NCBI RefSeq assembly: GCF_001194135.2
Contig: NC_068982.1
Span: 132,693,865-132,731,964 of the forward strand
Reading direction: 5' to 3'
Length of the DNA: 38,100 nt
DNA from: Octopus bimaculoides
Lineage: Eukaryota
This document shows, piece after piece, positions 1,831-37,239 of this stretch. How positions within the stretch are numbered: the stretch's first letter is position 1; each line of letters opens with the position of its first letter. Below the pieces are notes generated by a model, which was given only the letters and a program-made list of their open reading frames with translations, searched no databases and was not told the DNA's origin. The position numbers and the translations under genes were made by a program.

Positions 1831-37239
<35,409 letters not shown>

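Follow-up and report, generated by a model that had tools for sequence, protein, structure and literature searches.

Constitutive microexons are recognised through strong core splice signals. In long introns, recursive-splicing (RS) exons and ratchet points are also found, the RS exons being normally removed. Microexons dependent on SRRM3/4 have a strong 5' splice site together with a displaced pyrimidine tract and branch point, and they are defined by a UCUC...UGC enhancer (bioRxiv 10.1101/2024.09.17.613571). We compared with these systems a 12-nt exon of Octopus bimaculoides encoding Pro-Ala-Gly-Gln, for which our literature search on microexons in octopus, in cephalopods and in cadherin repeats returned nothing describing it.

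The exon lies in the window, the whole 38-kb stretch of DNA analysed here, whose minus strand carries a multi-exon cadherin gene recognisable by open stretches with DxD, LDYE and DxNDNxP motifs. In related models of O. sinensis and O. vulgaris the signal peptide comes first, then EC1, then EC2, which places the microexon in the second repeat from the N-terminus. The features used below are, in window positions:

32330 to 32341, minus strand: 12-nt microexon CCTGCTGGCCAG, Pro-Ala-Gly-Gln, phase 0/0, present in the deposited model P0001
32342 to 32372, minus strand: microexon acceptor, a pyrimidine-rich tract ending tttcaatttcag; upstream half of the block conserved in Argonauta and invariant across the Octopus copies
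32316 to 32329, minus strand: microexon donor gtgagt and conserved downstream intronic bases
37135 to 37239, minus strand: exon E1, 35 aa, end of EC1, EC1-EC2 linker and start of EC2
34437 to 34523, minus strand: exon E2, 29 aa, strands A' to C of cadherin repeat EC2
31119 to 31238, minus strand: exon E3, 40 aa, EC2 from the remaining C-D loop through strands D to F; collinear in Argonauta with L001 14148-14251
32342 to 34436, minus strand: intron upstream of the microexon, 2095 nt, containing an N gap
31239 to 32329, minus strand: intron downstream of the microexon, 1091 nt, holding a 174-codon ORF
about 37239, 34523, 31238, 25741, 24859, 22301, 20456, 18417, 16449, 14456, 8606 and 1903, minus strand: cadherin open stretches with DxD, LDYE or DxNDNxP motifs

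The host domain is a typical EC repeat, with a PF00028 match (E=1.8e-11 in the O. sinensis protein P0123), the DxD, LDYE and DENDN motifs and a seven-strand beta fold in the AlphaFold2 (AF2) model. One O. sinensis model, XP_036356631.1, has 1262 aa and at least 11 repeats. Annotation names of the gene differ (CELSR2-like, Fat4-like, protocadherin-like or protocadherin gamma-like, CDHR1-like), and we treat it only as a multi-repeat cadherin, with no finer assignment. An orthology with CELSR1, suggested by the top PDB match, was rejected, since that score sums many repeats and is not specific.

Reading the minus strand from 32341 to 32330 gives ...gtttatttgtttcaatttcag/CCTGCTGGCCAG/gtgagttcaa, so that the acceptor ending in tttcaatttcag is followed by CCTGCTGGCCAG and then by gtgagt. 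E2 finishes with ...GAATATTCTTTGAAA/gtaagg at 34437, its last codons being GAA TAT TCT TTG AAA (...EYSLK), while E3 starts at 31238 as ttttacttttag/AATTCAAAAGGA, opening with AAT TCA AAA GGA (NSKGIEDY...). All junctions between E2, the microexon and E3 are in phase 0, so that inclusion yields YSLK-PAGQ-NSKG and skipping YSLK-NSKG. The E1/E2 junction was reproduced exactly by the spliced-alignment script, the only one that was, and all others were read by eye. With a length within 27 nt, canonical AG and GT, both sides in frame and no stop, the unit has the structure of a coding microexon.

Its core signals are strong. The donor CAG/GTGAGT agrees with the U1 consensus at all 9 positions if R is allowed at +3, against 7, 6 and 6 for the neighbouring donors GAG/GTAAGA, AAA/GTAAGG and TTT/GTAAGT, being the strongest of the four local donors. 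Upstream, the nearest AG is 65 nt away and 74% of the 19 nt just before the microexon AG are pyrimidines. The first-pass annotation of this DNA had described a consensus donor and an acceptor free of AG over about 60 nt, and both descriptions are borne out.

Such signals in one genome do not make an exon. The window has a single YAG-N12-GTRAGT site where shuffling predicts 0.94, and at least one match was present in 57 of the 100 shuffled sequences. Scaled to the 3.2-kb intron and one strand, about 0.04 would be expected by our arithmetic, and the microexon is the only candidate of the form AG-(3..27 nt)-GTRAGT in the E2-E3 intron. We rejected pattern statistics alone as a proof, the site not being separable from chance in that way; it is conservation across species that takes the microexon beyond chance. 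A bare pattern expected about once per window leaves room for another reading, in which the 12 nt are not a retained exon at all, being instead a chance decoy or a conserved intronic element, such as a recursive-splicing ratchet, that was mis-built into gene models and then propagated between annotations. The downstream intron measures 11-18 kb in O. sinensis and O. vulgaris, and recursive sites are used in introns of this length in other animals. As in RS exons, the unit is very short, its 3' splice site almost abuts a strong 5' splice site, and it sits in a multi-kilobase intron.

The gene models bear on this reading in both directions. P0001 (UPI00069558AB, UniParc, 122 aa) is 100% identical to E1, E2 and E3 and contains YSLK-PAGQ-NSKG, and the ten further Octopus models that we recovered carry YSL[IK]-PAGQ-NSKG, with PADQ in one. 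The insert-bearing models include P0003 (~80% identical, YSLI-PAGQ-NSKG), P0122, P0123, P0124, P0127, P0183, P0184, P0326 and P0335, the last with the motif twice. In O. sinensis RefSeq, PAGQ is found in XP_029657140.1, XP_036370914.1, XP_036370919.1 and XP_036356629.1 (twice in this one), and PADQ in XP_036356631.1; in O. vulgaris PAGQ is found in CAI9718138.1, CAI9718147.1 and CAI9718148.1. The first database search gave no transcriptome-derived protein for the microexon region. The evidence of inclusion consists entirely of gene models, some of which may be seeded by protein alignment from models of other species, and annotation errors do spread by this route. Against a propagated error, records from GenBank/UniParc, RefSeq and ENA (O. 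vulgaris) all contain the microexon. The first-pass annotation had also stated that exons of this size are missed by annotation, which is not the case here: it is in UPI00069558AB and in all ten other Octopus models, so Octopus annotation gains nothing from its recognition.

Within Octopus, two loci of O. sinensis (L003 and L005) and two of O. vulgaris (L004 and L006) have the 12-mer, TTTCAATTTCAG and GTGAGTTT unchanged. Around 60 nt surrounding the microexon are invariant in these four loci, where the background intron identity is ~87%. These species are too close for such an identity to be decisive. A further O. sinensis locus, L002, begins downstream of E3, so the microexon site is outside it.

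Argonauta hians is more informative. In the intron of its locus, L001, blastn gives a single significant match, 58 nt long with the microexon at its centre (window 32372..32316, L001 13096..13153). The match takes in about 30 nt before the exon and about 15 nt after it, in introns of 3.2 kb in the window and 4.2 kb in Argonauta. When the whole 38-kb window was compared with Argonauta, all other collinear matches were coding exons and the rest were dispersed repeats. The Argonauta microexon reads TTTCAATTGCAG/CCCGTTGGTCAA/GTAAGT and encodes PVGQ; its acceptor ends with TTGCAG, and AG and GT are kept. Four differences separate the Octopus and Argonauta 12-mers, three of the four at synonymous third positions, which is the signature of a coding sequence and argues against a purely intronic element, as does an open 12-nt frame that a recursive site would not need. 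Exon and flanking intron are therefore conserved between orthologues with splice sites and frame kept, and the conservation of the 12-mer and its splice sites in other cephalopods, which the first-pass annotation had left to be checked, is found in O. sinensis, O. vulgaris and, as PVGQ, in Argonauta.

The deposited Argonauta model, GAB1597287.1, joins ...PELSLS straight to NSVGIEDF, without the microexon. This is one of the points in favour of a regulated switch. In such a switch the splicing would be tissue-specific, with neurons and sensory epithelia as examples, and adhesion would be tuned by an EC2 C-D loop of either 10 or 14 residues. As evidence of skipping, however, that model is weak, and its lack of the microexon is a probable omission. 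The Argonauta hians model can then be corrected by the conserved 12-nt exon at L001 13127-13138 that was left out.

The family alignment showed extra residues at the place of the insert also in two bivalve proteins. In Ruditapes philippinarum (L007, XP_060598701.1), the exon ending ...TYSMK/gtaact is followed 1.8 kb downstream by ctatttttcag/CCAATAGCGCAG/gtgagatc, a 12-nt microexon encoding PIAQ (L007 10518-10529) that is included in the deposited model; the next exon, cag/ACTCCTGAA... (TPELEDVY...), lies 0.7 kb further. In Mizuhopecten yessoensis (L008, XP_021353819.1), catttcag/GCGACAGGCCAG (ATGQ) is followed by GTGAGC... and is fused to the next exon, the model reading through 27 nt as coding up to YKDVFSI (ATGQ-VSVFQLFIL-YKDVFSI, L008 7641-7679). 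To judge from this arrangement, the downstream intron has evidently been lost in the scallop, its remnant being read as coding and the microexon having become part of a normal exon. The donors differ between the genera: Octopus has GTGAGT, Argonauta GTAAGT, Ruditapes GTGAGA and Mizuhopecten GTGAGC. The consensus of the peptide is P-x-[GA]-Q, and its last codon, CAG or CAA, also supplies the exonic bases of the donor consensus.

Positions and phases of the flanking introns in the bivalves are those of Octopus. The EC2-EC3 linker is DVQDxPP, not DxNDNxP, in Octopus, Argonauta, clam and scallop (P0326, P0007, P0149, P0139), which supports the orthology of these proteins, and we infer that the microexon is older than the bivalve-cephalopod split. 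A profile search of cluster representatives was dominated by giant multi-repeat cadherins and gave one useful orthologue (P0326). In P0285 an N-terminal EC2 precedes DVQDSPP, and the P..Q insert is lacking. The same linker was also seen in a few arthropod cadherins and in cadherins of unknown source; it may mark an orthology group or be an atypical linker with altered calcium binding.

Taken with the bivalves, a decoy or a ratchet site becomes highly improbable. The same intron positions are occupied in four genera from two mollusc classes, Pro1 and Gln4 are kept while the Octopus-Argonauta changes are mostly synonymous, and in the scallop the 12-mer is ordinary coding sequence. Unlike RS exons, then, the 12 nt are retained in the models, show conservation of the coding type and have been fixed in one lineage. 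The first-pass proposal of a real 12-nt in-frame coding exon, symmetric in phase 0 and readable with or without it, is upheld by the sequence, the models and the conservation.

How the exon is used is a separate matter. The likeness to the SRRM3/4 (eMIC) neuronal programme is considerable: the exon has 12 nt, is symmetric and in frame, has a conserved flanking intron and inserts a few residues in a surface loop of an interaction domain. Two further features agree with what is described for SRRM3/4-dependent microexons (bioRxiv 10.1101/2024.09.17.613571) and favour the switch: the very strong 5' splice site (9/9 positions), and a long AG-free zone (65 nt) that keeps the pyrimidine tract and the branch region at a distance from the AG. 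A UGC is also found at -5 in Argonauta and at -19 in the scallop. However, the UCUC...UGC enhancer is absent in all Octopus copies: no TGC was found within 100 nt upstream of the microexon in any of the five Octopus copies, that of the window included, which extends the earlier statement that there is none within 60 nt, and in the clam it is found only at -87 and -90. Unlike microexons of the neuronal programme, the octopus one is included in every Octopus model, and no skipping isoform appeared among the eleven, not even in the other isoforms of the same 90% clusters. In the scallop the 12-mer belongs to a larger exon and could not be skipped alone. The exon is symmetric and its skipping would restore the canonical loop length, and still we consider a tissue-specific switch unlikely.

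Constitutive microexons offer a closer parallel, with the consensus-perfect donor, the strong pyrimidine tract, the inclusion in every recovered Octopus isoform, residues that have been kept for long and their fixation as ordinary exon sequence in the scallop, although constitutive inclusion is deduced here from gene models only. The universal inclusion in the Octopus models, the scallop fixation and a UGC motif that is absent in Octopus and inconsistent elsewhere favour default inclusion. We therefore regard it as quite probable that CCTGCTGGCCAG is a real coding microexon and, jointly, that all or most transcripts include it by default; the evidence favours the earlier suggestion of a possibly constitutive exon. 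Twelve nucleotides are too short for cross-exon definition, so recognition must use strong core signals and nearby intronic elements. The microexon would be spliced between E2 and E3 by means of a donor, CAG/GUGAGU, fully complementary to U1, aided presumably by the long pyrimidine-rich AG-free acceptor region and by the conserved intronic bases on either side, about 30 nt before the exon and about 15 nt after it. Default inclusion would add P-A-G-Q after beta-strand C of EC2 and lengthen the C-D loop from 10 to 14 residues.

The position in the fold was examined with AlphaFold2 on P0123, using an alignment of 64 sequences, and with DSSP for the secondary structure. The model has a mean pLDDT of 86.9 (~87-90 in the insert region) and shows strand C at residues 148-155 (SLKYSLIP), PAGQ at 155-158, two short turns, strand D at 167-168 (YM) and ITVV at 176-179. 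These predicted strands confirm the placement of PAGQ directly after strand C in the C-D loop of EC2, as the first-pass annotation had proposed. From the Tyr of strand C to the Phe/Tyr of strand D there are 10 residues in most of the 64 aligned repeats; the Octopus EC2 loop has 14 with the insert and 10 without it. Skipping would therefore give a loop of family-typical length, which should be structurally tolerated. Compared with PF00028 repeats, this one shares the DxD, LDYE and DENDNxP calcium motifs and the seven-strand beta fold, and differs in a C-D loop four residues longer than most and in the DVQDxPP linker in place of DxNDNxP. The standard cadherin topology puts the C-D loop at the C-terminal end of a repeat, close to the LDYE motif of the E-F loop and to the EC2-EC3 calcium linker, and the four inserted residues could affect the geometry of the linker or the lateral surface.

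Several observations concern the rest of the locus. The exon expected after E3 (DEMFTANASVWIQVKDVQDMPPAF..., O. sinensis L002 1183-1302) is absent from the window and by synteny (window 28737-28515 corresponding to L002 550-773) falls in the N gap at 27817-28551, the likely explanation for the split of the locus into two deposited models, P0001 and P0002. P0001 and the O. sinensis P0123 both end in ...VQVF-VSI* (window 31110-31118, minus strand), having been read past E3 into the intron (gtaagtatttaa) up to an in-frame stop; the models may be truncated here, or they may represent a genuine short isoform that is secreted. The O. sinensis models P0005 and P0006 diverge after ...VVNITVL, in the exon homologous to window 8606-8376, where one adds further cadherin repeats (DVNDNGPQF..., window 1903) and the other a transmembrane segment with a cytoplasmic tail. 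The divergence points to membrane-anchored isoforms, some long and some short; the exon for the transmembrane segment was not found in the window.

Remnants of transposons were found in the introns (window 21080-21565 and 9096-9338, minus strand), one being a fragment of a reverse transcriptase (RVT_1, E=4.5e-5, which does not reach the Pfam cut-off) and another a fragment of a DDE_3 transposase (E=4.4e-7). Window 36424-36600, 25408-25467 and 10398-10460 (minus strand) hold a dispersed repeat whose tail is a trinucleotide repeat, and many sites in the Argonauta and Octopus loci share it. The 174-codon ORF adjoining E3 (window 31239-31762, minus strand) was considered as the tail of a retrotransposon, and this was dropped after Pfam gave no match.

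In Octopus one chromosome carries the 5' module, made up of the signal peptide, EC1 and EC2 with the microexon, several times in tandem (L003 and L005; L004 and L006; P0326/P0335). The O. vulgaris copies are 680 kb apart, and one O. sinensis RefSeq model spans 549 kb with the YSLI-PAGQ-NSKG motif twice, probably chaining two cassettes. Several cassette models end just past E3. These cassettes may be separate genes, alternative 5' cassettes or annotation chimeras. Between E2 of the window (34437-34523, minus strand) and O. sinensis L005 47473-47559 there are 9 nonsynonymous and 1 synonymous codon differences, and the nucleotide identity, at 0.85, does not exceed that of the flanking introns (0.82-0.92). 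By these counts, this part of EC2 appears to be fast-evolving or under diversifying selection, next to an invariant microexon. In the syntenic copy of L005 (~67428-67540), E3 reads ...YETRNFLNIQYKYL and differs from that of the window (14 aa). A 1-nt loss in a T run fits this difference, the RefSeq model then reading the next exon out of frame, and either an assembly error or a decaying copy would account for it.

An extension of the switch would make the microexon a regulated module in a tandem array of N-terminal cassettes, where the choice of cassette together with inclusion or skipping would diversify adhesion specificity, loosely as in clustered protocadherins. We hold this to be doubtful, rather more so than the simple switch. 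If it were true, the exon would be among the oldest microexons outside the known neuronal programme, dating at least to the bivalve-cephalopod ancestor, and if the exon were tissue-regulated in any manner, it would provide a small and defined handle on adhesion tuning in cephalopod tissues.

On the favoured reading of default inclusion, the age of the exon and the scallop variant with its lost intron are the only mildly notable points, the unit being otherwise an ordinary conserved coding microexon. The scallop represents a natural experiment, in which the loss of the downstream intron turned the microexon into ordinary exon sequence. With Pro1, Gln4 and the intron positions common to bivalves and cephalopods, the locus is a clean test case for the persistence of a very short exon without a UGC/SRRM enhancer.
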